In this document: piece after piece, positions 21,942-55,308 of the stretch
Layout: each line of letters opens with the position of its first letter
Position numbering within the stretch: position 1 is the first letter of the stretch
The notes under the pieces: model-generated
Databases searched by the model: none
Seen by the model: the letters and a program-made list of their open reading frames with translations, nothing else
What the model was told of the DNA's origin: nothing
Sequence record: NC_070963.1
Reading direction: 5' to 3' (one strand)
DNA: 64,000 nucleotides
Program-made: the position numbers and the translations under genes

Positions 21942-22622
21942 ATGGCAAAGGACGAAACCGAAATTGGTATTACCGGTAAACCTATTCCCAAAAAGAAAAG
22001 ATCTCCTAAAAAGCAATATGCGTTTGAAAAGAAGAGAAGGGAAAATCTAGGTCAAAATGTTGGTGGGATAACTTATAGATCCGATGTAAGTCCAAATTTT
22101 AATCCTCGTTCAGTTCGTGAAGAACTTCTTGTGGATTATCTTCTTGGGGAAGGTTTTGCTTCTGATGAAAAGTCAGCAAAAGCAATCGCTGGTGCAATGA
22201 GTGAAGAGTGGAAACAAAATATTGTTGAAAGAGGATTTGGATTGGGATTTCTAGATCTTAGAAAACCAGCAGCAAAACCAAAAGCAGAACCAACACCAAA
22301 ACCACCAACTGTAAAAAGTTCTGGTGGTGCAGGCGGACAGGTTACTGTAGATAAACAGTATCCAGCAACTCTTGGTGGAAAAAAAGGAGTGAAATCCACT
22401 GATGCACAGGGAACTGAGTATTTTATGCCATATCAACCTCAAGGTGGATTGCCAAAACCAAATACACTTCCAGATTTAAATAAGGCACAATATAAAAATA
22501 CTTACACAAATACATATAAAGATATCCCTGCCAGTCAGTCTACAAAGAATCCACAATCACATCTTAGTCGCACAGGAGTTCCTAGAGTTCGTAGTGCTAC
22601 ACGCACATATGGAATTGATTAA
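21942..22622 (+). CDS. Hypothetical late protein with EG(F/Y)A...MSEEW paralogous domain
   Basis: ELLVDYLLGEGFASDEKSAKAIAGAMSEEWKQNIVE; P/K-rich tail. Confidence 0.7.
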   Translation: MAKDETEIGITGKPIPKKKRSPKKQYAFEKKRRENLGQNVGGITYRSDVSPNFNPRSVREELLVDYLLGEGFASDEKSAKAIAGAMSEEWKQNIVERGFGLGFLDLRKPAAKPKAEPTPKPPTVKSSGGAGGQVTVDKQYPATLGGKKGVKSTDAQGTEYFMPYQPQGGLPKPNTLPDLNKAQYKNTYTNTYKDIPASQSTKNPQSHLSRTGVPRVRSATRTYGID

Positions 22623-22644
22623 GACCACTTTTTAAACTGTCCAC

Positions 22645-22671
22645 AAGAGGGTTTCACCACCCTCTTTTTTT
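22645..22671 (+). terminator. Intrinsic terminator
   Basis: AAGAGGGT-TTCACC-ACCCTCTT then T-run. Confidence 0.8.
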
Positions 22672-22700
22672 GTATGATAGGGTCATTCCAAAACAAACCC

Positions 22701-24872
22701 ATGACCGTCCGCCACGAAATCAAGTCCCAACTCGCCAAACTGCTTGCCACTGAAGATCTTGTGGTTGAGCACAAGAAGGTAGAGACTGCCCAGTTCAATG
22801 TTCACACCCGTGTGCTTACCCTGCCTATGTGGGAGAAGGCAAGCAACACCGTATATGACTTGCTGGTGGGGCATGAGGTTGGACACGCCCTCTATACCCC
22901 CGATGAAGATTGGACTCAAAATCATAAAGTTCCTCCACAATTTGTGAATGTTGTAGAAGACGCTCGTATTGAGAAATTGATGAAACGTCGTTATGCTGGT
23001 CTTGCAAAGACTTTTTACAACGGATATAAAGAACTTGCCAAAGATGATTTTTTCCAAATTGGTGATGACAATCTGGAAACGTATAATCTTGCTGATCGTG
23101 CAAATCTTTACTTTAAGATTGGCAACTTTACCAATGTTCCTATTCAACGTGGTGAAGAAATGGAAATTATCAATCAGATTGCAGGTGCTGAAACATTTTC
23201 AGATGCTTTGAATGCTGCTGAAGTTCTCTATAAGTATTGTAAACAAAAGCAGCAAGAAGAAATCAAAGTCAATCTTGATGCTCATGAAACTCCACAAAGT
23301 GGTAGTGGTAGTGGTAGTGATTCTGGCGAGTTTGAGAATCAAGAAAAAAGTGAAAACGATCAACCTGAAACTGAAGGATCTGATGGATCTGGATCGAAAG
23401 GTGAAACTCAACAAAAGAAGGATAATAATCAAAACCCTCAATCTCAAAATGGGCAGCAAGGTGATGAGGATACAGATCCTGAAGTGAAGACGATGGAATC
23501 ACTTGAAGAAGCACTTAAAGATCTTGCAAGCACTTCTGGTTATGAGAATGTTTATCTGGAATTGCCAAAACTTGATTTGAACAAAATTATTGTTACGAAC
23601 ACTGAAATTCATAATAAATGTAAAGAAACTTGGGGAGAGTATTTGGTCAATAGTGGATATTCTTCAGATGAAATTTTTGGCAAAGTCGATAAAAAATTTA
23701 ATGAGTTCAAGCGTTCGGCACAAAAAGAAGTCAATTATCTAGTAAAAGAATTTGAGTGTCGTAAGGCAGCAGATTCATATGCACGTGCTACAACTGCTCG
23801 AACTGGTGTTTTGGATTGTTCTAAACTTCATACTTATAAGTTTAATGAAGATCTCTTCAAAAAAGTTACGACTCTTGCCAATGGTAAAAATCATGGTTTG
23901 ATTTTTATTCTTGATTGGTCTGGATCAATGGGTAATGTAATGCTTGATACAGTCAAACAACTTTTCAATCTTGTTTGGTTTTGTAAAAAAGTTTCGATTC
24001 CATTTGAGGTTTACTCGTTTACAACTGATTACCCTCTTGTGAAGTATGATGAACAAGGAAAGGCAAATATGAGAACTCTCGCCTATGAAAAGCGGGATGG
24101 TCTAATTCAAGTTGGTGAATGGTTTTCTTTAATGAATATGCTTACCAGCAAAACAAATACTAGAACTCTTGATGATCAAATGCGAAATATTTGGCGTCTT
24201 GCTTGCTCCTTTGATTCTAAAAATTATATTCGTTATAATATTCCTTTGGGAATGAGTCTTTCCGGAACTCCTCTGAATGAGTCGTTAATTGCTCTTCATC
24301 AAATTCTGCCAAAATTTCAAAAAGAAAACAAACTTCAAAAAATTCAATGTGTTGTTTTGACGGATGGGGAAGCATGTGGTATTAAATGTCATCGTGAGGT
24401 CAAACGTCACTGGGAAAATGAACCTTATATTGGAACTTCTCATATTGGAAATAATTCTTTTCTTCGTGATCGTAAAACAGGACATACTTATTCTTTGAAT
24501 TGTGAGTGGCATGAAATGACCGATATTTTTCTTCAAAATCTCCGGGATAAGTTTGAAGATATTAACTTTATTGGTATTCGCATTCTTGAATCAGGTGGAG
24601 TCGGGACTTTTGTTCGTCGTTATTGTGGATACTATGGTGATCAATATAATAAAGTAATGAGTATCTGGAAAAAACAAAAAGCATTTTCTTTGAAAAACAC
24701 TGGTTATCATACTTATTTTGGTCTTTCTGCAAATGCTTTGTCCCAAGATAGTGAATTTGAAGTTTCTGATGATGCAACAAAATCACAAATTAAAAATGCT
24801 TTTATGAAGAGTTTGAAATCTAAGAAAATGAATAAAAAAATTCTTGGAGAGTTTATTGAACTTGTAGTTTAA
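22701..24872 (+). CDS. CobT-like protein: N-terminal HEXXH metallopeptidase-like region, acidic linker, C-terminal vWA domain
   Basis: HEVGH and EDARIE; ILDWSGSM (MIDAS DxSxS), GTPL, LTDGE; start taken at MTVRHEIK. Confidence 0.8.
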   Translation: MTVRHEIKSQLAKLLATEDLVVEHKKVETAQFNVHTRVLTLPMWEKASNTVYDLLVGHEVGHALYTPDEDWTQNHKVPPQFVNVVEDARIEKLMKRRYAGLAKTFYNGYKELAKDDFFQIGDDNLETYNLADRANLYFKIGNFTNVPIQRGEEMEIINQIAGAETFSDALNAAEVLYKYCKQKQQEEIKVNLDAHETPQSGSGSGSDSGEFENQEKSENDQPETEGSDGSGSKGETQQKKDNNQNPQSQNGQQGDEDTDPEVKTMESLEEALKDLASTSGYENVYLELPKLDLNKIIVTNTEIHNKCKETWGEYLVNSGYSSDEIFGKVDKKFNEFKRSAQKEVNYLVKEFECRKAADSYARATTARTGVLDCSKLHTYKFNEDLFKKVTTLANGKNHGLIFILDWSGSMGNVMLDTVKQLFNLVWFCKKVSIPFEVYSFTTDYPLVKYDEQGKANMRTLAYEKRDGLIQVGEWFSLMNMLTSKTNTRTLDDQMRNIWRLACSFDSKNYIRYNIPLGMSLSGTPLNESLIALHQILPKFQKENKLQKIQCVVLTDGEACGIKCHREVKRHWENEPYIGTSHIGNNSFLRDRKTGHTYSLNCEWHEMTDIFLQNLRDKFEDINFIGIRILESGGVGTFVRRYCGYYGDQYNKVMSIWKKQKAFSLKNTGYHTYFGLSANALSQDSEFEVSDDATKSQIKNAFMKSLKSKKMNKKILGEFIELVV

Positions 24873-24907
24873 TAAATAAAAATAAGAAAAAAATATAAAA
24901 AATTTGT

Positions 24908-25816
24908 ATGAATTCCCAGCAAGTTCAAGATATCCGCCTCATGTATGAGGCGGTTTATAATTCTCAGTTAAGAGAAAAAGTAGAAGAATATAATGATATG
25001 ATCCGTGATGAAGATATTGTTGAAGTTGCAACTGAGTATTTTTATACTTACGGATTAAATTCAACTGGCGTAGATATTTTAATTGAAAAAGTAGGTCTTG
25101 ATAATTTTGTTGAATTTGTTTATGATCTTTCTGAAGGTTTAATTCTTACTGAGGCAAAAAAGACAAGCAAAGCAAAAAAACAACCATCAATGCTTGCTAG
25201 TCAAAGAGCAAAATTAGCGGCACAGAAGGCAGCAAAAGAAAGAACAGAAACTGAAAAAAAAGAACCTGAATCAAAAGGTGCTGATACTGAAGCAAAATCA
25301 GAACAACCAAAATCAAAAAAACCAATTCGTGATGCAATTGCCAGACAAATTCTTGCTGGAATGGAGCGTCATCGTAAAGGAATGGAACTTGCTAAAAAAA
25401 CTGGTCAAACTTTAGGCAAACTTGCTTCTGTAACTCACGAAGCAGGCCGTCGTGCTGGTGAACATGTTAAAAAGCATGGTTTAAAGTCACTTGCAAATGA
25501 AGAAACTGATCTTTTTGATATTATTCTTGAGCATTTGGTATCAGAGGGTTATGCAGAAACCGAAGATGCTGCAGTGGTTATTATGGCAAATATGAGCGAA
25601 GAGTGGAAAGAAAACATTCTTATTGATGAAGGATTACTGGACGTTGCTGCTAGGGGTGTTAAGTTAATTGGCAAAAAGGTTGGTAATTATTTAAACTCAC
25701 CTTCTGATGATCCAGACATCAAAAGAGATCCTAGTTATAACCCAAAAACTGGTAAAGGTGATTATAAAGACCCACGTAAACAATCACCAAGACCAGGTGA
25801 GGTTAGAACATATTGA
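24908..25816 (+). CDS. Hypothetical protein with EGYA...MANMSEEW paralogous domain
   Basis: DLFDIILEHLVSEGYAETEDAAVVIMANMSEEWKENIL. Confidence 0.7.
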   Translation: MNSQQVQDIRLMYEAVYNSQLREKVEEYNDMIRDEDIVEVATEYFYTYGLNSTGVDILIEKVGLDNFVEFVYDLSEGLILTEAKKTSKAKKQPSMLASQRAKLAAQKAAKERTETEKKEPESKGADTEAKSEQPKSKKPIRDAIARQILAGMERHRKGMELAKKTGQTLGKLASVTHEAGRRAGEHVKKHGLKSLANEETDLFDIILEHLVSEGYAETEDAAVVIMANMSEEWKENILIDEGLLDVAARGVKLIGKKVGNYLNSPSDDPDIKRDPSYNPKTGKGDYKDPRKQSPRPGEVRTY

Positions 25817-25842
25817 AATTAAACCACCTTTCAAACTGTCAC

Positions 25843-25868
25843 AGGGGGCACTGACTGCTCCCTTTTTT
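25843..25868 (+). terminator. Intrinsic terminator overlapping a promoter
   Basis: AGGGGGCA-CTGAC-TGCTCCCT stem plus T-run. Confidence 0.75.
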
Positions 25869-25879
25869 GTGTGTATAAT
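25851..25879 (+). promoter_or_regulatory. Sigma70-type promoter (CTGACT-N17-TATAAT) for CobS-like gene
   Basis: Hexamers and 17-nt spacing seen directly. Confidence 0.65.
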
Positions 25880-25913
25880 ATGAGAGTTCAAATGAAACAC
25901 ACCTAACTACATT

Positions 25914-27050
25914 ATGACTCGCAAGTCCTCTGTGAACGACAAACAACTGATTGCCTCTATTCAAGAACTTTATGGGTCGGAAATCACTTCCGGAGACCTG
26001 AAGGGTTTTTGTGCCTCACGTGGTCTTAATTATCAGACTGTGACTCGTCGTCTGGAAAACTTTAAGACTTCTCGTGGTCGGTGGAATTTGGAAGTGACGC
26101 AAGAACGTGTTGAAGAGATTGAGCGTTCTTATCAAGCACCTCCTGCTCTTCCTGCTGTTGAACAAAACCTTATTCCTGATAAAGATGATACCTTCGTCAA
26201 GTTTGGTAACTTTAACGATATTAAAAAAATTATTCAGTCCCGTCTCTTTTATCCTACGTTCATTACGGGTCTTTCGGGTAATGGTAAAACGTTCAGTGTG
26301 GAGCAGGCGTGCGCTCAACTTGGTCGAGAATTGATTCGTGTCAATATTACTATTGAGACTGATGAAGATGATCTGATTGGTGGTTTCCGTCTTGTGAATG
26401 GTGAAACTGCTTGGCACAATGGACCTGTGGTGGAAGCACTTGAGCGTGGTGCTATTCTGCTTCTGGATGAGATTGACCTTGCTTCCAATAAGATTCTGTG
26501 TCTTCAGTCTATTCTTGAAGGTAAGGGCGTATTTCTGAAAAAGATTGGTCGTTTTGTCAAACCTGCTGCTGGGTTTAACGTGGTTGCCACTGCCAATACC
26601 AAAGGTAAAGGTTCTGATGATGGACGTTTCATCGGCACCAATGTGATGAATGAAGCATTTCTGGAACGCTTTCCTGTGACCTTTGAGCAGTCTTATCCTG
26701 CCCCTGCTACTGAGCAGAAGATTCTGGAAGGCATTTCTCTGGACTTGGGTGTGGAAGACCGCGACTTCTGTAAGCGTCTTTGCGATTGGGGTGAGGTTAT
26801 TAGAAAAACTTTCTATGATGGTGGTATTGAGGAAATCATCAGCACTCGTCGTCTTGTTCACATTATTCGTGCCTACAGCATTTTCCAAGATAAGGCAAAG
26901 GCAATTCAAGTTTGTATCAATCGTTTTGACGACGAAACCAAACAATCTTTCTTGGAACTTTATGATAAAATTGACGCAGATTTCCAGATGCCTGATGTTG
27001 AAGTAAAATCTTCAATTGGTTCTGACATTGACTCCACTCCTCCTTTCTGA
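25914..27050 (+). CDS. cobS: CobS/MoxR-like AAA+ ATPase
   Basis: GLSGNGKT Walker A, DEDDLIGG, LLLDEID, TANTKGKG, NEAFLERF, STRRL. Confidence 0.88.
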   Translation: MTRKSSVNDKQLIASIQELYGSEITSGDLKGFCASRGLNYQTVTRRLENFKTSRGRWNLEVTQERVEEIERSYQAPPALPAVEQNLIPDKDDTFVKFGNFNDIKKIIQSRLFYPTFITGLSGNGKTFSVEQACAQLGRELIRVNITIETDEDDLIGGFRLVNGETAWHNGPVVEALERGAILLLDEIDLASNKILCLQSILEGKGVFLKKIGRFVKPAAGFNVVATANTKGKGSDDGRFIGTNVMNEAFLERFPVTFEQSYPAPATEQKILEGISLDLGVEDRDFCKRLCDWGEVIRKTFYDGGIEEIISTRRLVHIIRAYSIFQDKAKAIQVCINRFDDETKQSFLELYDKIDADFQMPDVEVKSSIGSDIDSTPPF

Positions 27051-27056
27051 TATAAT
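27028..27056 (+). promoter_or_regulatory. Sigma70-type promoter (TTGACT-N17-TATAAT)
   Basis: Near-consensus hexamers, 17-nt spacer. Confidence 0.8.
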
Positions 27057-27057
27057 T

Positions 27058-27088
27058 GGGGAAGGTAAAACTATGACCTTCCCCTTTT
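27058..27088 (+). terminator. Intrinsic terminator after CobS-like gene
   Basis: GGGGAAGGT...ACCTTCCCC then TTTT. Confidence 0.75.
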
Positions 27089-27091
27089 ATT

Positions 27092-27475
27092 ATGGATGAA
27101 CATCCTTATTCTACAAATGAATTTACAATCACTATGAATGAACATAGTGGATATATGGACATTACAAAAACTTCTGTAACTATGAACAACAACGCGAATC
27201 ATTTTTGGAAATACAACGAAGATAAAATTCTAGATCAACTTGAAGAATATATTGCTGGAACTTATAATCAGCATTATGTTGATCGAACTGGTGGTGGAAC
27301 AGAACAAACGCTTGACAAAATCAAGCATAATCGTCGTGAAGGATTTTGTGCAGGTAATGTGACCAAGTATATTGATCGTTATGACACTAAAGGCACTCCT
27401 CGTGCGGATCTTTTCAAAGTTTTGCACTATACTATTCTTCTGATCAATCACCTGAATCTTGTTGAACAAAAATGA
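27092..27475 (+). CDS. Conserved hypothetical protein (DUF3310-like)
   Basis: TYNQHY, GFCAGNVTKYIDRY, DLFKVLHY motifs. Confidence 0.6.
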   Translation: MDEHPYSTNEFTITMNEHSGYMDITKTSVTMNNNANHFWKYNEDKILDQLEEYIAGTYNQHYVDRTGGGTEQTLDKIKHNRREGFCAGNVTKYIDRYDTKGTPRADLFKVLHYTILLINHLNLVEQK

Positions 27476-28137
27476 AACTTTCTGACAATACTCTGACCGT
27501 TCTAAAAAACTTTGCTGCTATCAACAACTCGATTCTAGTCAAGCAAGGTAACAAACTCCGCACGATTTCTGTAGCAAAAAATATTCTTGCCGAAGCAGAC
27601 ATTACTGAAGAATTCCCTCGTGAGTTTGCAATTTATGATCTTAATCAGTTTCTGAATGGTCTTGGACTTCATCAAGATCCGGATCTTGATTTTGGAGAAA
27701 ATTCTCATATTACTATCCGTGAGGGTAAACGTCGGGTTAAATATTTCTTTGCAGACCCCAATGTAATTGTTTCACCTCCTGAAAAAGAGATTCAACTTCC
27801 TTCTAAAGATGTTTGTTTCCAACTTGAAAGTGTGACTCTTGAGAAACTCTTGAAAGCAGCAGCAGTTTATCAACTTCCAGATCTTTCTGCGGTTGGTGAA
27901 GCAGGTGTTATTCGTCTTGTAGTTCGTGATAAGAAGAATGATACCTCTAACGAATACTCTATTGTAGTTGGTGAAACTGATAAAGAATTTACATTCAACT
28001 TTAAGGTGGAGAATATCAAGATTATTCCAGGTGCTTATGATGTAGTTGTGTCTTCTAAACTTTTGTCACAGTTTAAGAATAGTAAGTATAACTTGACCTA
28101 TTATATTGCTCTAGAACCCGACTCTACTTTTGAGTAA
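27472..28137 (+). CDS. gp45: Sliding clamp
   Basis: MKLSDNTLTVLKNFAAINNSI, FAIYDLNQFL, YYIALEPDS. Confidence 0.94.
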   Translation: MKLSDNTLTVLKNFAAINNSILVKQGNKLRTISVAKNILAEADITEEFPREFAIYDLNQFLNGLGLHQDPDLDFGENSHITIREGKRRVKYFFADPNVIVSPPEKEIQLPSKDVCFQLESVTLEKLLKAAAVYQLPDLSAVGEAGVIRLVVRDKKNDTSNEYSIVVGETDKEFTFNFKVENIKIIPGAYDVVVSSKLLSQFKNSKYNLTYYIALEPDSTFE

Positions 28138-28565
28138 TGGAATTTCTTCTTTATCTTTCTACTCAACAAATGGATGTCTATAAAATAGTATCCCAAAAAG
28201 TTCGAGTAGTTGAAAATTCTTCAGTTTGTAAAAAATACAGTGTGTTTGGGTTTTATAGTTCTACCCAAAAAACACTTTCAATTTGCACTGATAAAATTAA
28301 GAGTTATCAAAATGTTGAAAAAAATGTAAATGAAACTCTAATGCATGAATCAGTGCATGTTGCACAATCTTGTAAAACAAAATTTAGACATTTGACTTCT
28401 TTTGGAATTAATCCTTCAAGTATGCCTTTAAGTTATTATAAAGAAGCAGACCTAAAAAAAGTCATTGCTTTTGATAGAAACTTAAAAAATATTGACAGAG
28501 AGGCATTTTGGATGGAGGATAAACCTGAAAAAGTAAAGTATGTTGTTCAAAGGTATTGTTTCTAA
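28137..28565 (+). CDS. Hypothetical HEXXH zinc-metallopeptidase-like protein
   Basis: ETLMHESVHVAQ ... EAF. Confidence 0.55.
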   Translation: MEFLLYLSTQQMDVYKIVSQKVRVVENSSVCKKYSVFGFYSSTQKTLSICTDKIKSYQNVEKNVNETLMHESVHVAQSCKTKFRHLTSFGINPSSMPLSYYKEADLKKVIAFDRNLKNIDREAFWMEDKPEKVKYVVQRYCF

Positions 28566-29074: not shown

Positions 29075-29193
29075 AATACAAGAAAGGCACCTTTTTTCTT
29101 GATAAACATACACATAAAGTGTATATTTTTGATGGGAAAGAATGGTGGGAAATTGTCCCAAGTTCTTATTTGAAAAAACCTGATTGGATTTAA
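29071..29193 (+). CDS. Small hypothetical protein (40 aa)
   Basis: Manual translation MKYKKGTFFLDKHTHKVYIFDGKEWWEIVPSSYLKKPDWI; ATGA overlap; fills the gap before gp44. Confidence 0.5.
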   Translation: MKYKKGTFFLDKHTHKVYIFDGKEWWEIVPSSYLKKPDWI

Positions 29194-29196
29194 ATT

Positions 29197-38244: not shown

Positions 38245-38826
38245 ATGTTTATAGATACTCATCATATTGTTCCAAAATACGAAGGTGGAACTGATACTCC
38301 AAATAATTTAGTTAAACTTCCAAGAAAACTTCATCAAGAAGTTCATTATCGTCGTTGGTTGGTGTATAAAAATCTATCAGATTTATATGCTTTCCAACTT
38401 CTTGGTGGAAATTTATCTGATGATGAATTGAATAAGATTTATGATGATCAAGTTAATCGTTGCAAGCGAGATAGTAAAAAATTAACGGAGGCAAGGTTGA
38501 GTTCGGAAAACTGGAGACAGGCACATCAGTCTGAGGAATATAAACAAAAAAAGAGAGAGCAAAGTTTATTATTAAATCAATTGGGAAAAATAAATTCCCC
38601 AGAATCATCATTGCTTATAAGTAAGGTAAAGCAATCTGTAACAAATTACAATTCTAAAAGAATATCAGTTTATGGTATAATATGGGAAGATTCTTCCAAG
38701 TGTTTTAGAAATGGTGGGGCAAAAGGTCTAACCTTGAGGCAATTGAGGTATAGGGCAAAAAGTGGAAATTATCCAGATATTTTTTATGTGGATATTGATA
38801 ATGAGGTAAATGATGGAACGAATTGA
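38245..38826 (+). CDS. HNH putative homing endonuclease
   Basis: HHIVPKYEGGTDTPNNLVKLPRKLHQEVH; inserted between uvsX and gp41. Confidence 0.85.
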   Translation: MFIDTHHIVPKYEGGTDTPNNLVKLPRKLHQEVHYRRWLVYKNLSDLYAFQLLGGNLSDDELNKIYDDQVNRCKRDSKKLTEARLSSENWRQAHQSEEYKQKKREQSLLLNQLGKINSPESSLLISKVKQSVTNYNSKRISVYGIIWEDSSKCFRNGGAKGLTLRQLRYRAKSGNYPDIFYVDIDNEVNDGTN

Positions 38827-42759: not shown

Positions 42760-44418
42760 ATGAAAAAGCATATTGCTGAGGATCTTCCTGCAAGAAAGCA
42801 CCCACAGGCACAAATGTCTGCACAAACAAAAAAACCAGAGGGTGATCAAAAAAGACCTGGTGGAAGAGATGATGCTGGTGGAAACAAAACACCAGAAGAA
42901 AGAATTAGTCAAGCTGCTTCAGATATTCGTTATCGAGCAAGAAGAGAAGATATTCCACTAAGACAAGCATATTCTCAATATATGCAAAATAGTTCAATGT
43001 CCGAACAGGAAAAATCTGCAGTAAGAGATAAACTTTTTGGTAAAGGTGGAATGCAATCCGAAGACTTTACCAATTACATGAAAGAATCTGCTTCAAATGC
43101 GGTTTCTAAAGCACTTTATAAAGTTTTTGCAGAAAAGAAAAGTGAAGTGATTGATTCGGATCAACTCAAGTATGGGTTAGAAGAAAAAGTAAATGATACT
43201 TCTGAGGGAAAAAAGTATAAAGTAAGAGTTACTGATCCTAAAAATAATGTTACATATGTGAGATATGCAACTCGTCAAAAAATCAGTGAACTTAGAGGAA
43301 AAGGTCTTGAAGTTGAAATGACCGAATATGGAACTCCATATGAAGGTGAGAGAACAAAAGGTGAAAAAACTGCTGAAGTTTTAGGTAATAGAGCAAAAAA
43401 AGATTATGATGGTGATGGTAAAGTAGAAAGCGGTGCTAAAGAGTATCGTGGAGCAGTTCATAACGCTATTCAACGCAAGAAAGGTGGAGTTGCTGATGGT
43501 AAAGATACCTCAAGCGTAAAAGAAGGTTTTTTAGGTGAGGTAGCAGCAACTGCAAATTTACCCCAAACTGATGCACCTCAAATAGTAAATCCAGATACTA
43601 ATCCCACACAAATTGATTTTACTACTAAAAAAAATAAAATTGTTGTGAATCCAACTGACAATTCACAATCTAAATTGATGGCACATCATGAAATGAAAGG
43701 TGATGTAATTCTTGAAAATGGTTACTCTAAGTTTCTTAAAAAAGTTCATGCTCTTCAAGAAAAAGCAGAAAGTGAGCAGCAGCAAAAACTTTTTGGACTT
43801 GCACTTTCAGTTAAAAGAGGTAAAACCTCAAGATCAGAAGTAAGTGCTGAAGTTCTTAAAATTGTAGATTCGATGAGTGAAAAAGAAATTCGAAAGTTTG
43901 CTAAAACTAAGCATGAAGGAATTCCTAAAAAAGTTCAAAAAGAAGAAACTGAGTGTGGATCTGAAAAAGAAAATGAGGTAGATCGTCGTCCTCTTGCAAC
44001 AGCAATTAATCTTGCAAAAAATAAAGCAAGAGCAATGGGGGATAAAAATCCTATTGTAATGGTTGCTTCTGAAAATATTGAATCTGGACCAATTCTTCCT
44101 GGAGAAAAGGGAAAAAGAGTTTTTCCTAAAGGACAAGAACCCAAAGCGACTGGAGCAAAACTACCACTTCAAAAAGCACACTATGAACTGGAAGGTGAAG
44201 TTCTTGATGAGGAAATGCCAAAAAAAGCAAAAAAGAAACCATCTGAAGGAACTACAACTCTTTCACATATGGGAATCTATGGCAGAAAGCAAAAACAAAA
44301 GAAAACACCATTGAAAAGAATTTTTTCTGATAAAACAGATGATGATGGTCCTGATGATAATGATCCACGCAATCATCCTTCTCTAAGTGCCAGAGAAAGA
44401 AATCCAAATTTAAGATAA
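42760..44418 (+). CDS. Modular hypothetical protein containing a DUF3008-like module
   Basis: AESEQQQKLFGLALSVKRG...MSEKEIRKFAKTKHEGIPKK; DYDGDGKVES motif. Confidence 0.65.
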   Translation: MKKHIAEDLPARKHPQAQMSAQTKKPEGDQKRPGGRDDAGGNKTPEERISQAASDIRYRARREDIPLRQAYSQYMQNSSMSEQEKSAVRDKLFGKGGMQSEDFTNYMKESASNAVSKALYKVFAEKKSEVIDSDQLKYGLEEKVNDTSEGKKYKVRVTDPKNNVTYVRYATRQKISELRGKGLEVEMTEYGTPYEGERTKGEKTAEVLGNRAKKDYDGDGKVESGAKEYRGAVHNAIQRKKGGVADGKDTSSVKEGFLGEVAATANLPQTDAPQIVNPDTNPTQIDFTTKKNKIVVNPTDNSQSKLMAHHEMKGDVILENGYSKFLKKVHALQEKAESEQQQKLFGLALSVKRGKTSRSEVSAEVLKIVDSMSEKEIRKFAKTKHEGIPKKVQKEETECGSEKENEVDRRPLATAINLAKNKARAMGDKNPIVMVASENIESGPILPGEKGKRVFPKGQEPKATGAKLPLQKAHYELEGEVLDEEMPKKAKKKPSEGTTTLSHMGIYGRKQKQKKTPLKRIFSDKTDDDGPDDNDPRNHPSLSARERNPNLR

Positions 44419-47323: not shown

Positions 47324-49620
47324 GTAACGGAACAAAAGTAGTCAAGAGAAGCGGTGATATTGAATCTCTTGATTTAAATAAATTACATGTAATGGTCGAA
47401 GAATCTTGTAAGGATCTTGCTGGCGTTTCTGCCTCTCAAGTTGAAATGCAATCTGGAATTCAATTCTACAATGGAATTACCACTGCAGAAATTCAAGAAA
47501 TTCTAATTCGTTCTGCTTCTGACCTAATTGATCTTGAGCACCCTAATTACCAATTTGTTGCTGCTCGTCTTCTATTGTTTTCAATTCGTAAACAAATTTT
47601 TGGAAGAATTTACAATAGTTTGACTGTGTTGGAACATACACGTAAGTGTGTTGAAATGGGAGTTTATGATCCTGAAATTTTAAATCTATATTCTGAAGAA
47701 GAATTTGAAAAGTTAGAGTCTTTTATTGATCATGATCGAGATTATCTTTTTACTTATGCAGGTCTTCGTCAAGTCGTAGATAAGTATCTCGTTCAAGATC
47801 GTAGCACTAACGAACTTTATGAAACGCCACAATACATGTATCTTTTGATTGCGGCGACTATATTTTCAAAGTATCCAAAAGAAACACGTTTAGATTACGT
47901 TAAGAAGTATTATGACGCAATCTCAAAGCATAAAATCAACATTCCTACACCAATCATGGCAGGTGTTAGAACCCCACTTCGCCAATATGCAAGTTGTGTT
48001 CTTGTTGATGTTGATGACACCCTTGACAGCATCTTCAGTTCTGATATGGCAATTGGTCGCTATGTATCTCAGAGAGCAGGAATTGGTATCAACGCAGGTC
48101 GAATCCGTGGCATCAACTCTAAAATCAGAGGTGGGGAAGTTCAGCATACAGGCGTTGTCCCATTCCTCAAAAAGTTTGAAGCAACTGTTAGATGTTGTAC
48201 ACAAAATGGGATTCGTGGTGGAAGTGCTACTGTACATTTCCCAATCTGGCACCAAGAAATCGAAGATATTCTAGTTCTCAAAAATAATAAAGGAACCGAA
48301 GATAATCGTGTCCGTAAGTTAGATTATTCTATTCAAATCAGCAAACTCTTCTATGAGCGATTCATCCGTAACGAAGAAATCTCCCTCTTCTCTCCCCACG
48401 CTGTTCCTGGTCTGTATGATGCTTTTGGCACTGATGGATTTGACGACTTATATCTTCGTTATGAACGAGATGAGTCTATTCCAAGAAAAACTATCGGCGC
48501 TCAAGAACTCTTTCTTTCACTCTTAAAGGAACGTGCTGAAACTGGTCGTATTTACATTATGAATATTGACCATTGTAATTCTCATTCATCTTTCCTTGAT
48601 AAAGTTGAAATGAGTAATCTTTGTCAAGAAATTACTCTTCCGACTAAACCTATTCAACATATTGATGATCCTGATGGTGAAATTGCTCTTTGTATTTTGA
48701 GCGCAATTAACGTTGGAAAACTTAAATCTAATGATGAACTTGAAGTTCTTTGTGATCTTTCTGTTCGTTCTCTTGATGAGTTGATTGACTTTCAAGGATA
48801 CCCCGTCAAATCGGCAGAAATCGCCACCAGAGCACGTCGTTCTCTTGGGGTAGGGTATATTGGTCTTGCTCACTATCTTGCCAAACATGGGGAGCATTAT
48901 GACGATCCTGGCGCTTGGAAATTAGTTCATGATCTAACAGAAGCATTTCAGTATTATTTGATTAAAGCAACTGTTAATCTTGCTAAGGAAAAAGGTGCTT
49001 GTGAATATTCACATCGAACTAAGTATGCTCAAGGTATTCTTCCTATAGATACTTACAAGAAAGACGTGGATGAAATTGTACCTAACGAACTTAAGTATGA
49101 TTGGGAGTCGCTACGGGAGCAGGTTAAGAAGTATGGAGTACGGAACTCAACATTGTCCGCACAGATGCCATCGGAGAGCAGTTCCGTTGTGTCAAACGCA
49201 ACCAATGGAATCGAACCACCTAGAGGATACTTGTCCGTTAAGAAGTCGAAGAAAGGACCTCTTAAGCAAATTGTTCCACAGTACCAAACTCTTAAGAACA
49301 ATTATACGCTTCTTTGGGATATGCCTAGCAATCTTGGTTATATCAATATTGTTGCTGTTATGCAAAAATTCTTTGATCAGGCGATTTCTGGAAACTGGTC
49401 ATATAACCCACAGAATTATTCAGATAATGAAGTTCCTGTTAGCGTAATGGCACAAGACCTTCTAATGACCTATAAGTTGGGTTGGAAGACCAGTTATTAT
49501 CAAAATACCTATGACATTAAAACTGATGAAGTAGTTGAAGAACCAAAGCAAGAACTCCAGTCTCTTCTAGATGATATTATGAGTAGTGATGAAGATGATT
49601 GTGAAAGTTGCAAAATTTGA
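47320..49620 (+). CDS. nrdA: Ribonucleotide reductase class Ia alpha subunit
   Basis: ATP-cone, ASCVL, SNLCQEI, LCILSA, MPSESSS, C-terminal CESC; no intein. Confidence 0.97.
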   Translation: MSNGTKVVKRSGDIESLDLNKLHVMVEESCKDLAGVSASQVEMQSGIQFYNGITTAEIQEILIRSASDLIDLEHPNYQFVAARLLLFSIRKQIFGRIYNSLTVLEHTRKCVEMGVYDPEILNLYSEEEFEKLESFIDHDRDYLFTYAGLRQVVDKYLVQDRSTNELYETPQYMYLLIAATIFSKYPKETRLDYVKKYYDAISKHKINIPTPIMAGVRTPLRQYASCVLVDVDDTLDSIFSSDMAIGRYVSQRAGIGINAGRIRGINSKIRGGEVQHTGVVPFLKKFEATVRCCTQNGIRGGSATVHFPIWHQEIEDILVLKNNKGTEDNRVRKLDYSIQISKLFYERFIRNEEISLFSPHAVPGLYDAFGTDGFDDLYLRYERDESIPRKTIGAQELFLSLLKERAETGRIYIMNIDHCNSHSSFLDKVEMSNLCQEITLPTKPIQHIDDPDGEIALCILSAINVGKLKSNDELEVLCDLSVRSLDELIDFQGYPVKSAEIATRARRSLGVGYIGLAHYLAKHGEHYDDPGAWKLVHDLTEAFQYYLIKATVNLAKEKGACEYSHRTKYAQGILPIDTYKKDVDEIVPNELKYDWESLREQVKKYGVRNSTLSAQMPSESSSVVSNATNGIEPPRGYLSVKKSKKGPLKQIVPQYQTLKNNYTLLWDMPSNLGYINIVAVMQKFFDQAISGNWSYNPQNYSDNEVPVSVMAQDLLMTYKLGWKTSYYQNTYDIKTDEVVEEPKQELQSLLDDIMSSDEDDCESCKI

Positions 49621-49669
49621 TTCAGTTAAATATTACAGTGTGAGTTAAAGTTAATTTGTTGAGGGAAGT

Positions 49670-50851
49670 ATGGTTTTTAATTTTAAAACAAATTCAGAGG
49701 AAAAAAGCATGGTCGAATCAATGACCGTTTTTAATTCTCAAGAAGTAGATACCAAAAAGCAACCTATGTTTTTTGGTCAACCATTAGGATTACAAAGATA
49801 TGATCAATATAAATATCCAATTTTTGACAAATTAACTCAACAACAATTAGGTTATTTTTGGAGACCTGAAGAAATTTCTTTACAGAAAGATAGAGGAGAT
49901 TATCAAACTCTTCGTCCAGAACAGAAACATATTTTTACATCAAACTTAAAATATCAGATTATGCTTGATTCAGTTCAAGGAAGAGGCCCTGGTATGGCAT
50001 TTGCCCCATACTGTTCTCTTCCTGAATTGGAAGCATGTATGAAGGTCTGGGAGTTTATGGAAATGATCCATTCTCGCTCTTACACGTATATTATAAAAAA
50101 TGTATATTCAGACCCTTCTGAAGTTTTCGATACGATTTTAAATGATGATCGTATTATGGAACGTGCTATTAGTGTCACTGAATCTTATAATGAATTTATC
50201 AATAGTGCTCAACAATATGGAACATCTAATGATTGGATTTATGCGTTAGAACAAGTTCCCACCGCACAAAGTACAAGATATGAACTTAAAAGAAAACTGT
50301 ACCGAGCAGTTGCAAACGTTAATATTCTTGAAGGTATTCGCTTTTACGTCAGTTTCGCTTGCAGTTTTGCATTTGGCGAACTCAAGCTTATGGAAGGAAG
50401 TGCAAAAATCATCTCATTGATTGCTCGTGACGAAAGTCAGCACTTGGTCATTACTCAGAACATTCTAAACAAGTGGAAAGAGGGTGATGACCCTGATATG
50501 AAGAAAATCACACAAGAAGAAGAACAGTGGGTCTACAAGACGTTTGAGAAGGCAGTTAATCAAGAAAAACTTTGGGCAGAATATCTGTTCAAAAATGGTT
50601 CTATGATTGGACTTAATGATAAACTTCTTCAACAATATGTCGAATGGGTTGCAAATCGCAGAATGAAAGCGATTGGTCTAAAACCGATTTATGACATTCC
50701 CGCGAAAAATAATCCACTACCATGGACTGATCATTGGTTGAATTCTAAATCTTTGCAAAATGCCCCACAGGAAGTGGAAATTGAACAATACTTAATTGGT
50801 GGCATTAAGCAAGATATGAAAAATGATACTTTTGCAAACTTTAAACTATGA
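49670..50851 (+). CDS. nrdB: Ribonucleotide reductase class Ia beta subunit
   Basis: FWRPEEI, LDSVQGRG, EMIHSRSY, LEGIRFYVSF, IARDESQH. Confidence 0.97.
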   Translation: MVFNFKTNSEEKSMVESMTVFNSQEVDTKKQPMFFGQPLGLQRYDQYKYPIFDKLTQQQLGYFWRPEEISLQKDRGDYQTLRPEQKHIFTSNLKYQIMLDSVQGRGPGMAFAPYCSLPELEACMKVWEFMEMIHSRSYTYIIKNVYSDPSEVFDTILNDDRIMERAISVTESYNEFINSAQQYGTSNDWIYALEQVPTAQSTRYELKRKLYRAVANVNILEGIRFYVSFACSFAFGELKLMEGSAKIISLIARDESQHLVITQNILNKWKEGDDPDMKKITQEEEQWVYKTFEKAVNQEKLWAEYLFKNGSMIGLNDKLLQQYVEWVANRRMKAIGLKPIYDIPAKNNPLPWTDHWLNSKSLQNAPQEVEIEQYLIGGIKQDMKNDTFANFKL

Positions 50852-50994
50852 TTTCTAGTCATCATGAAATTGAGTGGAATCTTGAAGAAATGAAAAATGC
50901 TTACAAAGAAGCAGCAGAATCTGATAAATTTTTATTTGGAGACTTTGATTATTCTTATGTTTGGAAAGAATCAAATAGTAATGATGTTTATTAG
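50848..50994 (+). CDS. Small hypothetical protein (48 aa)
   Basis: Manual translation; ATGA overlap with nrdB. Confidence 0.45.
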   Translation: MISSHHEIEWNLEEMKNAYKEAAESDKFLFGDFDYSYVWKESNSNDVY

Positions 50995-51015
50995 AGTCCT
51001 TCGGGACTTTTTTTT
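50995..51015 (+). terminator. Intrinsic terminator with UUCG tetraloop, followed by late promoter TATAAATA (51015-51022)
   Basis: AGTCC-TTCG-GGACT then T-run. Confidence 0.85.
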
Positions 51016-51049
51016 ATAAATAAAATTATAGAGAACTAAGAAAGTAAAA

Positions 51050-52246
51050 ATGTCTAGAATTACTGGATTTGATGCTGCAAATTTGATAGAAGCATATAAT
51101 GCGGTGTATGCTCCTCAAGAAGAGATTGAACTCACTGAAGAACAATTTGCTGAAGAAGTTCAGCATTGGGTAGACGTTGTATTAGATGAGGGACATGATT
51201 TAAGTTCAATTACTTGGGATGATATTTATTTGATGGCAGAAGATGCTGTCGGTAGAACAGGTAGAAGTTGGGGTCAACAATTTGGGCAAGCACTAAGAGG
51301 CGCGGCTGGCGGTGCTTTAAACTCCGCCAGAAACGTAGTAAGAGGTGCTGCTGATGTTGCTGGTGCAAGTGCCCAAGGATTAATTGGACAAAAAACTACT
51401 TCAACTAATCCACTTGCTAGAATGGCAAATACTTCAAGCCGTATAGTAACTGCTCCAGCAAGAGGATATGGTAGATTTGTTCAAGGCAGTGCTGAAGGAA
51501 TTCTTGGAAAGAGCGGTTCACCAACTGCACCATCCTCAACTACTTTTCAAAATACTGGTGGATATGGTAGATACCAATCGCCAGCAACTCAACAATATGG
51601 CAATCAATCAAGATTTGCTGGTGCTCGTGATGCTGCAGTTGCAAGAGCAAGACAAATTAAAGGATCTCCCGTAGTTGGTCCAAGGTTAGTTGGTCCAGGA
51701 TCTTCTTCGACACCAGCAAGACCTGCTGTTCGTCCTGCAGCAACTACTACTGCTTCCACAAGACCTGTAGCAACCGCTCTCGCTGCCCCTGCCGCTCCTA
51801 GACCAACACCAACAGCAGCAGTTCCAAATGCTCCTGCTGCTCCTAGACCTTCTCTTGCTCAGCAAAGAGCAGAACTTGAGCAAATGAGAAAAAGATCTCA
51901 ACAGCGTATCATGGCACAAGGAGGAACTCCAGCAACTCCTTTAGTTCAATCTTTTGATCCTTTTGATATTGTAATGGGATATTTGATTGATGAAGGTTAT
52001 GCTGAAAATGAAGAAGCAGCAACAGTCATTATGGCAAATATGAGTGAAGGGTGGAGAGAAGAAATTCTTGAGGGAAGAGTTGCTAGTGAAACAATGGGTT
52101 CTGGTGAAAGAAGAAGAGAAAGAAATGATAGATATAGAGAAGAAAATCCAACTCTACCAAGTGGAAATCCTATAGGATCAAATGCTCAATTAATGAGACA
52201 AATGGCACATGCCAAAAAAAGAGGAGTGAAGAAGAAAAAAGATTAA
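51050..52246 (+). CDS. Late low-complexity protein with EGYA...MANMSEGW domain
   Basis: A/P/R/G-rich centre; DPFDIVMGYLIDEGYAENEEAATVIMANMSEGWREEILE. Confidence 0.7.
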   Translation: MSRITGFDAANLIEAYNAVYAPQEEIELTEEQFAEEVQHWVDVVLDEGHDLSSITWDDIYLMAEDAVGRTGRSWGQQFGQALRGAAGGALNSARNVVRGAADVAGASAQGLIGQKTTSTNPLARMANTSSRIVTAPARGYGRFVQGSAEGILGKSGSPTAPSSTTFQNTGGYGRYQSPATQQYGNQSRFAGARDAAVARARQIKGSPVVGPRLVGPGSSSTPARPAVRPAATTTASTRPVATALAAPAAPRPTPTAAVPNAPAAPRPSLAQQRAELEQMRKRSQQRIMAQGGTPATPLVQSFDPFDIVMGYLIDEGYAENEEAATVIMANMSEGWREEILEGRVASETMGSGERRRERNDRYREENPTLPSGNPIGSNAQLMRQMAHAKKRGVKKKKD

Positions 52247-52267
52247 ATTTATTTGTTTAATTTATTC

Positions 52268-52301
52268 AGAGGGTCTAACCAACCCTCTTTTTTTATAAAT
52301 A
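52268..52301 (+). terminator. Intrinsic terminator plus late promoter TATAAATA (52294-52301)
   Basis: AGAGGGT-CTAACCA-ACCCTCT, T-run. Confidence 0.8.
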
Positions 52302-52323
52302 ACTAAAAAAGTAAGAAAGAAAC

Positions 52324-53667
52324 ATGAAGTCCTTTAGTCAGTTTTTGGAAGAATCCTATTTGAGTGAAGAAGAGGCAAGACAAGGATCATTATTTACCCG
52401 CAGTGGAAAACCACAAAACTTTAAGGGTGGAAAAACTCCATTCACTGCAACAGATCCAACACCACTTCCAACATCTAAAAGACTTTCGGCAGGGGCACCA
52501 GAAGCACCAAAAACATCTCCTGGACAATTAAGTATTCCAGAACCAAAAACAACTAAGGTTTCTGGATCACAAGTTAGAAGTTCTGGAGAAGCAAGACAAG
52601 GATCATTACTTACAAAAAGTGGTCAAGCGCAAAATTTTACAGGTGGAAGAACTCCTTTTGTTGGGACTGAACCAGTAAAAGCAACCAAACGTCTCCCAGC
52701 AGCTGCTCCAGAAGCACCAAAAGTTTCTTCAGGTCAACAAGTAATTAGACAAACTTCTAATCCACCAACTACAAAAGCATTACCTCCCGGACAAAAAGGT
52801 GCTCCATTAGCAACAAGGTCTTCTACCAAACCAGCAACAACTCCACCAATTCAAGCAGTAAATGTAAAGGATATTACTCCAAAACCAAAGGCACTTCCTG
52901 CTGGTAAACCACCTTCTGGTCCAAAACTAACAGGAGGAACGGCAAAAGCAGCAAGCACGACATTAACTGCTGCAGGAAGTGCATCAAAATTAGGAAAAAT
53001 TGCAAAATTTGCTGGACCAGCATCTGCTGCGCTTGATACAGCACTCTCTACTGCGGATGAAAGAGCAAAAGGATCTGGTTGGGCGAGATCACTCGCTAAA
53101 GGTGCTACAGTTGCTGCTGGAGGTCTTTTAGGAGGAACTGCTGGAGCAATCGGTGGAGGTGGACTTCTAAGTGCTGCTACAGGAACTGCTGGCGCTATGG
53201 CAGGTGGTGCTGCTGCAGAAAAGGCATTTGATACTGTTGCTGGAGCTAATGCAAAAGAAAGAAAAGCAATGGCAACAGCAAATCGTCAGCGTCAAGCAGG
53301 AACTGCTATCAAAGGTATTGGTGGAAAAACAACCTTTGATACTAAAAAGAATACTATGACAACTGGTACAGGTTCGCAAAGAAAAACAGTTGGACTTGCT
53401 AAAACAGGTGTAGTTCAGCGTGGAGGTCAATCTGTTGCTGGACATCTTGCATATAAAGATGGTAAAGCGGTTTATAAAGCAGGACCAAGTGCTCAATCAC
53501 TTGCTAAAACTTCTTCCAATCCACTAGAAAGAATTGGTAGATCTTTATTTGCAGGAGCATATAAAAAGCATGATATTGCAAAATCTCAGCAGGCATTAAC
53601 AAAAGCAAGACAATCTGATGCTGCTCGTAATAAAGCACTTGGTGTTAAAATGAAGCCTGGTGGATGA
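52324..53667 (+). CDS. Late basic low-complexity protein with CTS-like N-terminus (MKSFSQFLEE) and internal repeat
   Basis: Two ~50-aa copies starting EARQGSL; K/A/G/T/P-rich. Confidence 0.7.
   Translation: MKSFSQFLEESYLSEEEARQGSLFTRSGKPQNFKGGKTPFTATDPTPLPTSKRLSAGAPEAPKTSPGQLSIPEPKTTKVSGSQVRSSGEARQGSLLTKSGQAQNFTGGRTPFVGTEPVKATKRLPAAAPEAPKVSSGQQVIRQTSNPPTTKALPPGQKGAPLATRSSTKPATTPPIQAVNVKDITPKPKALPAGKPPSGPKLTGGTAKAASTTLTAAGSASKLGKIAKFAGPASAALDTALSTADERAKGSGWARSLAKGATVAAGGLLGGTAGAIGGGGLLSAATGTAGAMAGGAAAEKAFDTVAGANAKERKAMATANRQRQAGTAIKGIGGKTTFDTKKNTMTTGTGSQRKTVGLAKTGVVQRGGQSVAGHLAYKDGKAVYKAGPSAQSLAKTSSNPLERIGRSLFAGAYKKHDIAKSQQALTKARQSDAARNKALGVKMKPGG
52372..52737 (+). repeat. Intragenic duplication (~52372-52527 and ~52588-52737)
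   Basis: EARQGSLFTRSGKPQNFKGGKTPF...APEAPKTSPGQ vs EARQGSLLTKSGQAQNFTGGRTPF...APEAPKVSSGQ. Confidence 0.85.
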
Positions 53668-53671
53668 TTTT

Positions 53672-53679
53672 TATAAATA
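53672..53679 (+). promoter_or_regulatory. T4-type late promoter TATAAATA
   Basis: Exact consensus upstream of the ORF at 53710. Confidence 0.75.
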
Positions 53680-53709
53680 CCTTTATATAAAGGTATTAAA
53701 TTTATAACC

Positions 53710-55308
53710 ATGTCTAGAATTTCGCAAGATTTCATCAACAGTGTTGGATACTTGTATGAGGAAATCAACATTCAGCAGAATGACTTTCTGAATGAAGAAT
53801 CTCAGTATTATGATGCCGAAGTATCAGAACTTGTAGAAGATATTCTTGCTACTATCTCAACTTCAATGGTTTATGAGGGATATAGTGCAGAAGGTATTAT
53901 TGGATTTCTTGCTGATTCTTCGGAGCAAGATATTGTTGAAAAGTATCTAAGTTTTGATGAGAACATTCTTACCGAAAGTGTAGTTTCTGAAGATTATATT
54001 ACAGAACAACTAGAACTTTTTGATGTTGCAATTGATGAAGGTATTGGATCATTAATTGGAAAAGTTGCTAAAGGTGCAATTGGACTTGCAGGAAGAGTAG
54101 CATCAAAACCTGCTAGAGCAGCAGTTGCTAAAAAAATGATGACAAGTAAAAATCCTGCTAAAACAGCAGCAGCGGTTGATAGACTTGCAAGAATGAAATT
54201 AAACAAAGCAGGTGCTCCTTCTGATATAACTAAAAAACTTGTAGATGCTGCACCAGATGTTTCGACCAAAACAAGGATAGCAGCAACTGCTCCTGTTGTT
54301 GGTAAACTTGTTAAAGGTGCTCAAAAAGTAAAAGATATTGGTCAAGGTGCAAAAAAAGCACTTCCAGGAATCGCTAAAGGTGCTGGAATCTTTGGATTAG
54401 GTGCCGCTGGTGGTTATGTTGGGGCAAAAATGGCAGGTGCTGGGTCTGGAACAAAATCAACAGAATCTCAAAGACCACCTGCTTCAGCAGATGCTTCAGC
54501 AGATGCTCCATCAGCACCTTCTACACCAGGATCTAGAACATCTTCTACACCTGCACCTAAAGCACCTTCTACAAGATCTTCTGCATCAGGTTCTAAACCC
54601 AGATCAAAAGATGCTGCACGTCCAGGAGAAACTCCAATGCAACAGTGGGCAAGACTACATCCAAATCTTGCTGCTAAGGTCAAACCGGGTCAGTCTGGAT
54701 ATGAAGAAATTTCACAAACAAGAGTGAAACCTGGTCCTTATGAGAAGCAAAATCAAACTCCCACTCAAGGACCATCAACTGCACAAATTGATACAAAGGA
54801 CGTAGATGCTGCCATAAAAGCAGAACAAGAAAGACAAAAGAAGAGATTAGAGCAGCAAAAGAATACCTCTATGACTGCTAAAGAATCCTATGAACCTTAT
54901 GATGTTGTTTTAAATTACTTGATGTCTGAGGGTCATGCAGATACCCTAGATGAAGCAAATTATATCATGTTAGAGATGGATGAAAAAGCAATTGGAACAA
55001 TTATTGAAGAGTATGAAGATTATTTACTTGCTGAAGAGATTCAAGAATGGGTCAATAGTCTTTTAGATGAAGGATACGATCTTTCAGAATATTCTTGGGA
55101 TGATGTTGTTGAGTATTATGTAACTGAAGCAAAGTATGGAACTGCAAAAGGTCGTAAAAAACTTGCAAAGAAAGTTCGTGCAGGAAAAGATGTTGGTAAA
55201 AAAGGTGCTGGATTTGAGGCAATTGTAGACAAAGCATCAGGAAAATATGGCAAAAAAAGAGCAACTAAAATTGCCGCTGCAGCAATGTGGAAAAATCTTG
55301 GTAAGTGA
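53710..55308 (+). CDS. Late modular protein, acidic/basic alternating, with EG(H/Y) paralogous domains
   Basis: YDVVLNYLMSEGHADTLDEANYIMLEM; EWVNSLLDEGYDLSEYSWDD; basic C-terminal module. Confidence 0.7.
   Translation: MSRISQDFINSVGYLYEEINIQQNDFLNEESQYYDAEVSELVEDILATISTSMVYEGYSAEGIIGFLADSSEQDIVEKYLSFDENILTESVVSEDYITEQLELFDVAIDEGIGSLIGKVAKGAIGLAGRVASKPARAAVAKKMMTSKNPAKTAAAVDRLARMKLNKAGAPSDITKKLVDAAPDVSTKTRIAATAPVVGKLVKGAQKVKDIGQGAKKALPGIAKGAGIFGLGAAGGYVGAKMAGAGSGTKSTESQRPPASADASADAPSAPSTPGSRTSSTPAPKAPSTRSSASGSKPRSKDAARPGETPMQQWARLHPNLAAKVKPGQSGYEEISQTRVKPGPYEKQNQTPTQGPSTAQIDTKDVDAAIKAEQERQKKRLEQQKNTSMTAKESYEPYDVVLNYLMSEGHADTLDEANYIMLEMDEKAIGTIIEEYEDYLLAEEIQEWVNSLLDEGYDLSEYSWDDVVEYYVTEAKYGTAKGRKKLAKKVRAGKDVGKKGAGFEAIVDKASGKYGKKRATKIAAAAMWKNLGK

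Follow-up and report, generated by a model that had tools for sequence, protein, structure and literature searches.

In bacteriophage T4 the first 10 residues of proteins carrying a capsid-targeting sequence (CTS) suffice for packaging, with residues 4 and 7 serving targeting and residues 8 and 10 serving processing (PMC9026906). Cleavage by the T4 prohead protease gp21 falls after L/I-x-E, and the head subsequently loses most of the core fragments (PMC9026906). We analysed a window of 64,000 nucleotides (nt) from Synechococcus phage S-SRM01 (sequence record NC_070963.1; MW015081.1; 240,842 bp; Kyanoviridae), a freshwater T4-like cyanomyovirus, in which four open reading frames (ORFs), here called A, B, C and D, encode proteins with a common acidic domain. 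This domain defines a large virus-only family without annotation, tied by its promoters to late expression, and its boundaries yield protease-site predictions at the level of single residues.

Few viruses in lakes and oceans are as abundant as T4-like cyanophages. To our knowledge, no homologue of a T4 internal protein has been recognised in this group, and the contents of their heads are essentially unknown. The window takes in the last part of the head module, with the portal, a gp67-like ORF, the gp21 protease, the gp22 scaffold and gp23, and likewise the recombination, replication and nucleotide-metabolism module. All coordinates below are window positions, which equal the MW015081.1 position minus 124,000.

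Four proteins with a common acidic domain

All four ORFs are annotated as hypothetical proteins in the S-SRM01 record. A first-pass annotation made from the letters of the window had singled them out for a recurring acidic unit, and this was borne out: the translations are as it gave them, and the shared unit is significant by both BLASTP and profile comparison. The ORFs are built as follows (↓ marks the point after a boundary glutamate).

21942..22622, + strand: ORF A, 226 aa, with a basic N-terminus, the acidic domain at residues ~56-101 and a basic Pro/Lys/Gly-rich tail
24908..25816, + strand: ORF B, 302 aa, with an N-terminal helix (LMYEAVY), an acidic N-terminal block ending LILTE↓AKK, a basic middle, the acidic domain and a tail
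51050..52246, + strand: ORF C, 398 aa, with an N-terminal helix (NLIE↓AYNAVY), a second module (module 2), a disordered Ala/Pro/Gly/Arg-rich segment of ~230 aa, the acidic domain and a basic tail
53710..55308, + strand: ORF D, 532 aa, with a 110-aa acidic N-terminal block (GYLYEEI helix plus a degenerate domain-like unit) ending AIDE↓GIG
within 53710..55308, + strand: remainder of ORF D, with ~280 aa of basic low-complexity sequence including a Gly-rich hydrophobic stretch, the acidic domain, module 2 and a Lys-rich tail
22107..22244, + strand: acidic three-helix domain in A, ending NIVE↓RG
25502..25639, + strand: acidic three-helix domain in B, ending ILIDE↓GLL
51950..52087, + strand: acidic three-helix domain in C, ending EILE↓GRV, the copy modelled with AlphaFold2
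54886..55023, + strand: acidic three-helix domain in D (D-type), GHADT...YIMLEMDE

The domain comprises 46 aa, and pairwise BLASTP across the ORFs gives E values from 9e-15 (B with C, 25/38 residues identical, 66%) to 1e-9 (A with B). The count of copies per genome that the first-pass annotation had proposed as a check was run with a profile of the four sequences: across all 240,842 bp of the genome it found exactly four copies, with E values of 1e-24 to 1e-27, all in the ORFs already picked out. A degenerate further copy of the pattern, near the N-terminus of D, was seen by eye and lies below profile detection. In a non-redundant alignment of 43 sequences, L12, G16, A24, M28, M31 and I39 vary hardly or not at all. 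For the 46 residues of C AlphaFold2 predicts a three-helix bundle with a mean predicted local distance difference test (pLDDT) score of 91.7, and a hand count from the alignment puts the net charge of the domain at about -9.

Neither the sequence nor the fold matched a described protein. No Pfam family matched A–D above the gathering threshold, and 120 homologues carried no precomputed Pfam domain. The domain profile found nothing among PDB sequences (E>=0.47), the best Foldseek match in the PDB had an E value of 1.0 with generic three-helix bundles the only structures returned, and the best VIA-align Z score was 5.7 (about 4 for HMG boxes), below the noise level stated for helical models by that tool. 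No significant structural match linked the domain to small helical bundles already described, the HMG box among them. B, C and D do match the PHROG families phrog_3708, phrog_22522 and phrog_27516 (E 9e-17 to 1e-4); these phage protein families are all annotated 'unknown function', and no Pfam family lies over the domain. In a word search of 5.8 billion proteins every named homologue was a 'hypothetical protein'.

The family is large, restricted to viruses and without annotation. At a cut-off of E<=1e-3 the domain profile matched the representatives of 4,358 clusters (50% identity), and at E<=1e-10 those of 3,051; more than 500 viral stretches in IMG/VR encode the domain. A scan of one genome for each of 185,579 prokaryotic species returned three matches, all on contigs of metagenome-assembled genomes, and the nearest ESM Atlas clusters are 100% viral, with hypothetical proteins of viruses as the sole matches. 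Among cultured phages the domain is present in S-CRM01 (g93, g94, g291, g292), P-SSM2, P-SSM5, S-SCSM2R, B3, B23, ACG-2014f, S-CAM7 and DSL-LC02/03; the profile search found no copy in Syn9, S-PM2, P-SSM4 or P-HM2. Many members have two or three copies, some in tandem. In S-SCSM2R ORF205 the domain stands at the extreme N-terminus and is followed by EILE↓GYKG, and the 51-aa P-SSM2 protein PSSM2_140 consists of the domain alone. Since it occurs alone, N-terminally or in tandem, the domain may have a function of its own.

The S-CRM01 genes g95-g94-g93 (L082 8424-9318) show a particular arrangement. The g95 product has the N-terminal helix of the family and its gene a TATAAATA promoter, g94 begins in the middle of an acidic domain, and g93 is a second, intact small member. 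A frameshift, or the annotation, seems to have divided a single family member into g95 and g94.

Alternating acidic modules and basic segments

A second module common to C and D had also been proposed, and the similarity is significant (BLASTP E 2e-10). It is N-terminal in C and C-terminal in D.

51143..51241, + strand: module 2 in C, residues 32-64, ending YLMAE↓D
55024..55128, + strand: module 2 in D, residues 439-473, ending YYVTE↓AKYG

Its pattern, WV..L.EEG[YH]DLS..[ST]W[DE][DE], is kept in 23 non-redundant relatives. That module 2 might be a diverged copy of the acidic domain found no support in profile-profile comparison (hhalign probability 9.6%). The shared N-terminal helix is likewise real and strongly conserved in the relatives of C (L-M/I-E-A-Y-x-A-V-Y) and of D (G-Y-L-Y-E-E-I).

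Module 2 also occurs elsewhere. S-SZBM1 gp082, at the same genomic position as window ORF 294-2123, carries it together with DUF3008. Within the window, DUF3008 (E 6e-14) is found in a basic low-complexity protein of 552 aa (42760-44418, +) that has a calcium-loop-like DYDGDGKVE and GATAAATA upstream; its gene directly follows that of a cytidylyltransferase, an enzyme that virions of S-SM1 and S-SZBM1 have been found to contain. Because its relatives S-CREM1 ORF219 and S-SZBM1 gp082 both combine pieces of the DUF3008 protein with module 2, modules are shuffled among several late proteins.

Between the acidic units the proteins are basic. Along A–D the charge alternates sharply: per 20 residues, some blocks have a net charge of -5 to -7 and others of +3 to +8. 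Over 150 diverse relatives the domain holds 26.5% D+E and 2.9% K+R, and the remainder of the protein 18.5% K+R in an Ala/Gly/Pro/Ser/Thr-rich background. When C was modelled at full length from an alignment of 26 sequences, only the N-terminal helix, module 2, the domain with a single helix ahead of it and the tail helices came out with confidence; the greater part of residues 92-262 scored under pLDDT 50. A–D are thus predicted to be mostly disordered, modular proteins in which folded acidic units alternate with basic low-complexity segments. The first-pass annotation had described the segments between the acidic units as unrelated payloads. This description has to be dropped: the segments are alike in composition (Ala/Gly/Pro/Ser/Thr/Lys/Arg-rich) and in predicted disorder, and the 10 longest relatives contain no enzymatic Pfam domain, the sole match being a short LisH in one of them. 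They are therefore better regarded as similar basic low-complexity segments than as unrelated cargo.

The modules end in a regular way. All six x-E boundaries quoted by the first-pass annotation (LTE↓AKK, IDE↓GLL, MAE↓DAV, ILE↓GRV, IDE↓GIG and VTE↓AKY) are in the sequence. In protein numbering, cuts would be predicted after Glu 82 and 241 of B, after Glu 14, 64 and 341 of C, and after Glu 110 and 473 of D. At the end of the acidic domain I39 is kept in 87-93% of sequences and is followed by a hydrophobic position 40; position 41 holds Glu in 68-76% and Asp in a further 9-14%, after which column conservation collapses. Module 2 ends Y-(L/I/V)-x-E in 23/23 non-redundant sequences, which become unalignable directly after, and for the copy in C at least 90% of relatives have the form Y-L/I-x-E. 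The C-type N-terminal helix has an invariant E14-A15-Y16 preceded by L/M-M/I. These regular boundaries are the best support, as motif evidence, for proteolytic processing. A shuffle test for L/I-x-E at acid-to-basic switches was significant for B alone (P=0.0045), a test in which shuffling itself destroys the block structure.

It had been suggested that the acidic unit is cut away. The conserved L/I-x-E at module ends fits a cut there, but C-type proteins have no conserved x-E site upstream of the domain that would permit a clean excision. A cut in these proteins would therefore free the C-terminal basic tail, with the domain staying on the preceding low-complexity segment.

Late promoters, conserved slots and a CTS-bearing neighbour

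The four genes, together with P0006, the gene between C and D, are preceded by late-promoter-type elements.

21914..21921, + strand: TATAAATA late-promoter element of A, 28 nt upstream, after a hairpin and T-run
24871..24878, + strand: AATAAATA, a weaker late-promoter-like element of B, 37 nt upstream
51015..51022, + strand: TATAAATA of C, 35 nt upstream, directly after a terminator-like hairpin at 50993-51010
52294..52301, + strand: TATAAATA of P0006, 30 nt upstream, after a hairpin at 52268-52288
53672..53679, + strand: TATAAATA of D, 38 nt upstream
55327-55351: terminator-like hairpin after D
52324..53667, + strand: P0006, 447 aa, with the leader MKSFSQFLEE, net charge +43, low-complexity sequence and a Gly/Ala-rich hydrophobic stretch, and without the acidic domain

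The window contains 15 copies of TATAAATA against 4.4 expected, and 14 of them are on the coding strand. The element lies 28-45 nt upstream of gp22, the large terminase, A, C, P0006, D and ORF 44734, usually right after a hairpin and T-run. In a non-redundant set of family members on viral contigs, the 60 nt upstream contained TATAAATA in 59/75 and NATAAATA in 70/75 cases. The promoter type therefore bears out the earlier description of the products as late proteins, and the motif supports the assignment of A–D as late genes with a gp55-type promoter. At 50993-51022 and 52268-52301 the terminator-like hairpin, the T-run and TATAAATA are fused into a single compact unit of 30 nt, in which the terminator's T-run passes straight into the late promoter.

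The genes had been called dispersed, and they do not form one cluster. Their positions are not random, however, but fall in two conserved late-gene islands. Most contigs have the arrangement nrdA-nrdB-[C-P6-D]-NAD synthetase, others gp46-[A-like]-732-aa peptidase-[B-like]-cobS, and a third group gp41-[member]-cytidylyltransferase. P-SSM2 keeps the nrdB slot (PSSM2_211, 212, 213). Given these conserved slots and the late promoters, we regard A–D as late-gene islands inside the replication module.

P0006 belongs to the same conserved island as C and D. Its leader MKSFSQFLEE can be set against MKTYQEFIAE, with which T4 IPII and IPIII begin. The N-terminal T4 propeptide has 10-19 residues, of which 4 and 7 are aromatic, 8 is L/I and 10 is E. 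In 23 non-redundant orthologues F4 is kept in 22/23, F7 in 23/23, L/I8 in 22/23 and E10 in 22/23, and TATAAATA stands upstream of 21/23. Besides P0006 itself (52324, 447 aa), the window has + strand ORFs at 2582 (102 aa), 14614 (56 aa) and 33606 (59 aa) that begin MK[ST]F.QF, and a late-promoter-like element precedes each of the four. These are candidate CTS-targeted head cargo.

The presumed processing enzyme and the major capsid protein are also in the window.

11233..11883, + strand: gp21-type prohead protease, whose own N-terminal region contains LITE↓E and FITE↓G
13128..14543, + strand: major capsid protein gp23, with the T4-like maturation site FLSE↓A, which we take to be the counterpart of FLTE↓A in T4 gp23

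Some other ORFs of the window may be recorded here. Directly after the portal gene lies an acidic ORF of 55 aa (10537-10704, +; annotated hypothetical) with TATAAATA at 10505; its N-terminus, MEELIDLIAS..., resembles MEGLIEAIKS... of T4 gp67, and it is probably a gp67-type core protein. The 732-aa 'peptidase' between A and B (22674-24872, +) carries a zinc-metallopeptidase motif, HEVGH, and its C-terminal half looks vWA-like by eye; it adjoins a MoxR/CobS-type ATPase and had no Pfam match at E<0.01. An ORF of 193 aa after uvsX (38245-38826, +), with TATAAATA 31 nt upstream (38214), shows by eye an N-terminal HNH-type motif and probably encodes a homing endonuclease.

A possible place in the prohead core

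The most likely role of A–D, to which we give about even chances, is that of prohead-core or internal head proteins processed by gp21. The proteins would be made late and built into the scaffolding core together with their CTS-bearing neighbour P0006. The gp21-type prohead protease would cut after the conserved L/I-x-E that closes each acidic module and so separate the acidic units from the basic peptides. The acidic units might neutralise or organise the basic segments before packaging and would then be free to leave like the T4 core fragments, and the basic peptides would stay with the DNA. The first-pass annotation had taken the acidic unit as an anchor in the prohead core, cut away to release variable payload peptides, and thus as a second route into the cargo system of the CTS-like leaders. 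The late promoters, the protease-type boundaries and the CTS-bearing neighbour speak for part of this interpretation; its diversity of payloads did not survive. Anchoring in the core and presence in the virion could, in our estimate, equally well prove right or wrong. Going further, it is conceivable, though in our view less likely than not, that the acidic domain and module 2 constitute a second, CTS-independent, cleavable system for capsid loading and charge neutralisation, widespread in T4-like cyanophages (>4,000 protein clusters). Such a system would bring long histone- or protamine-like basic disordered peptides into the head, released by gp21 at the module boundaries, that condense or accompany the DNA.

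Several observations weigh against a place in the head. A–D have no canonical N-terminal CTS (they start MAKDE.., MNSQQ.., MSRITG.. and MSRISQ..); C has LIE↓A at residues 12-14 and does not match the CTS pattern. As this defining feature is lacking, the four proteins were not placed in the CTS class. A search with the domain profile showed no homology to T4 gp67, gp68, gp22, gp21, Inh or Alt fragments (best hmmsearch E 0.15). L/I-x-E is a short motif, and because Ile39 is probably a core residue of helix 3 the conservation of the 'site' is partly structural. The stand-alone PSSM2_140 is not explained by a role as anchor only.

The virion lists point the same way. The virion proteomes of Sullivan 2010 are those of S-SM1, Syn9 and S-PM2; of these, Syn9 and S-PM2 were searched by profile and have no domain copy. 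S-SZBM1 gp082, with module 2, is not among the 30 proteins detected in S-SZBM1 virions, and no family member appears in the virion lists that could be read, which are shallow. The S-SCSM2R proteome lists only one protein of unknown function, which may or may not be ORF205. S-CREM2 gave no match to S-CRM01 g291. Tryptic mass spectrometry would be expected to under-detect Lys/Arg-rich disordered proteins and departing propeptides, and absence from these proteomes is therefore weak evidence. The third most abundant S-SZBM1 virion protein (exponentially modified protein abundance index 2.66) is gp081 (= S-SZBM1_195; L098 2274-2537), a Val/Thr/Ala-rich hypothetical protein of 87 aa encoded just after the small terminase gene and unlike the acidic-domain family.

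The strongest alternative, which we nevertheless hold to be rather unlikely, is that A–D are late proteins that never enter the virion: disordered cytoplasmic or assembly factors such as assembly chaperones, formers of DNA- or RNA-binding condensates, or proteins that act on lysis timing or on the envelope. The acidic bundle would then serve to bind proteins or to neutralise the protein that carries it, and the x-E ends would simply mark where helices stop. Absence from the shallow virion lists fits this explanation, as do the occurrence of the domain alone and the Gly/Ala-rich hydrophobic stretches of D, P0006 and relatives, which could be membrane-active. The genes also lie among replication and nucleotide-metabolism genes and not in the head module; T4 ipI-III, however, are likewise outside the head module, beside e and tRNA genes. 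The tight and wide conservation beside a gene with a full T4-type capsid-targeting leader, and a Glu conserved exactly at every module boundary, argue against it, and the expected escape of such proteins and of expelled propeptides from tryptic proteomics takes force from their absence.

A second alternative keeps A–D as internal head proteins but reverses the roles. Here the acidic domain would act as effector and be injected along with the genome, for example as a DNA mimic or a binder of host proteins, much as T4 IPI is an anti-restriction protein, and the basic segments would be handles for packaging or DNA binding. The domain is by far the most conserved part of these proteins, whereas the basic segments evolve freely; it is strongly acidic (about -9 over 46 residues), it exists as a 51-aa protein of its own and it occurs in two to three copies per protein. 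Moreover, T4 internal proteins are injected and at least one of them is an anti-defence factor (PMC9026906). We still judge this improbable: neither in sequence nor in structure did the domain resemble known DNA mimics or any solved protein, nothing points to a host target, and the conservation fits a structural role in the core equally well. Finally, a mere compositional artefact of acidic low-complexity sequence, conceivable in proteins so rich in it, is refuted by the position-specific match at the six near-invariant residues, profile E values to 1e-27, a confident AlphaFold2 fold and thousands of homologues.

If A–D are indeed gp21-processed core or internal head proteins, they would correspond in cyanophages to the internal proteins of T4 and represent a modular kind of capsid loading that is new, with a bearing on DNA condensation, on early take-over of the host and on engineered protein delivery by phage heads. 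The concept has a parallel in phiKZ-like jumbo phages, in which head-internal proteins are cut by the prohead protease after Glu into several fragments. The lineage differs, and the phiKZ-like inner-body proteins are not known to be related in sequence to A–D.

The T4 internal proteins IPI, IPII, IPIII and Alt resemble A–D in their late genes scattered outside the head module, in being basic proteins presumed to lie with the DNA and in their L/I-x-E bounds. At positions 4, 7, 8 and 10 the T4 CTS is matched by the neighbour P0006 and not by A–D, which differ from the T4 proteins in having no canonical CTS and no sequence similarity, and in their much greater length, their disorder and their folded acidic modules. 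The acidic helical segments are shared with the T4 core proteins gp67, gp68 (with a basic tail) and gp22; gp21 cleaves these T4 proteins, and the head loses most of the pieces. FLIE↓G of T4 gp67 resembles the EILE↓G end of the acidic domain. Because S-SRM01 has its own gp22 and a gp67-like ORF, A–D would be additional components of a T4-type core and not replacements for it.

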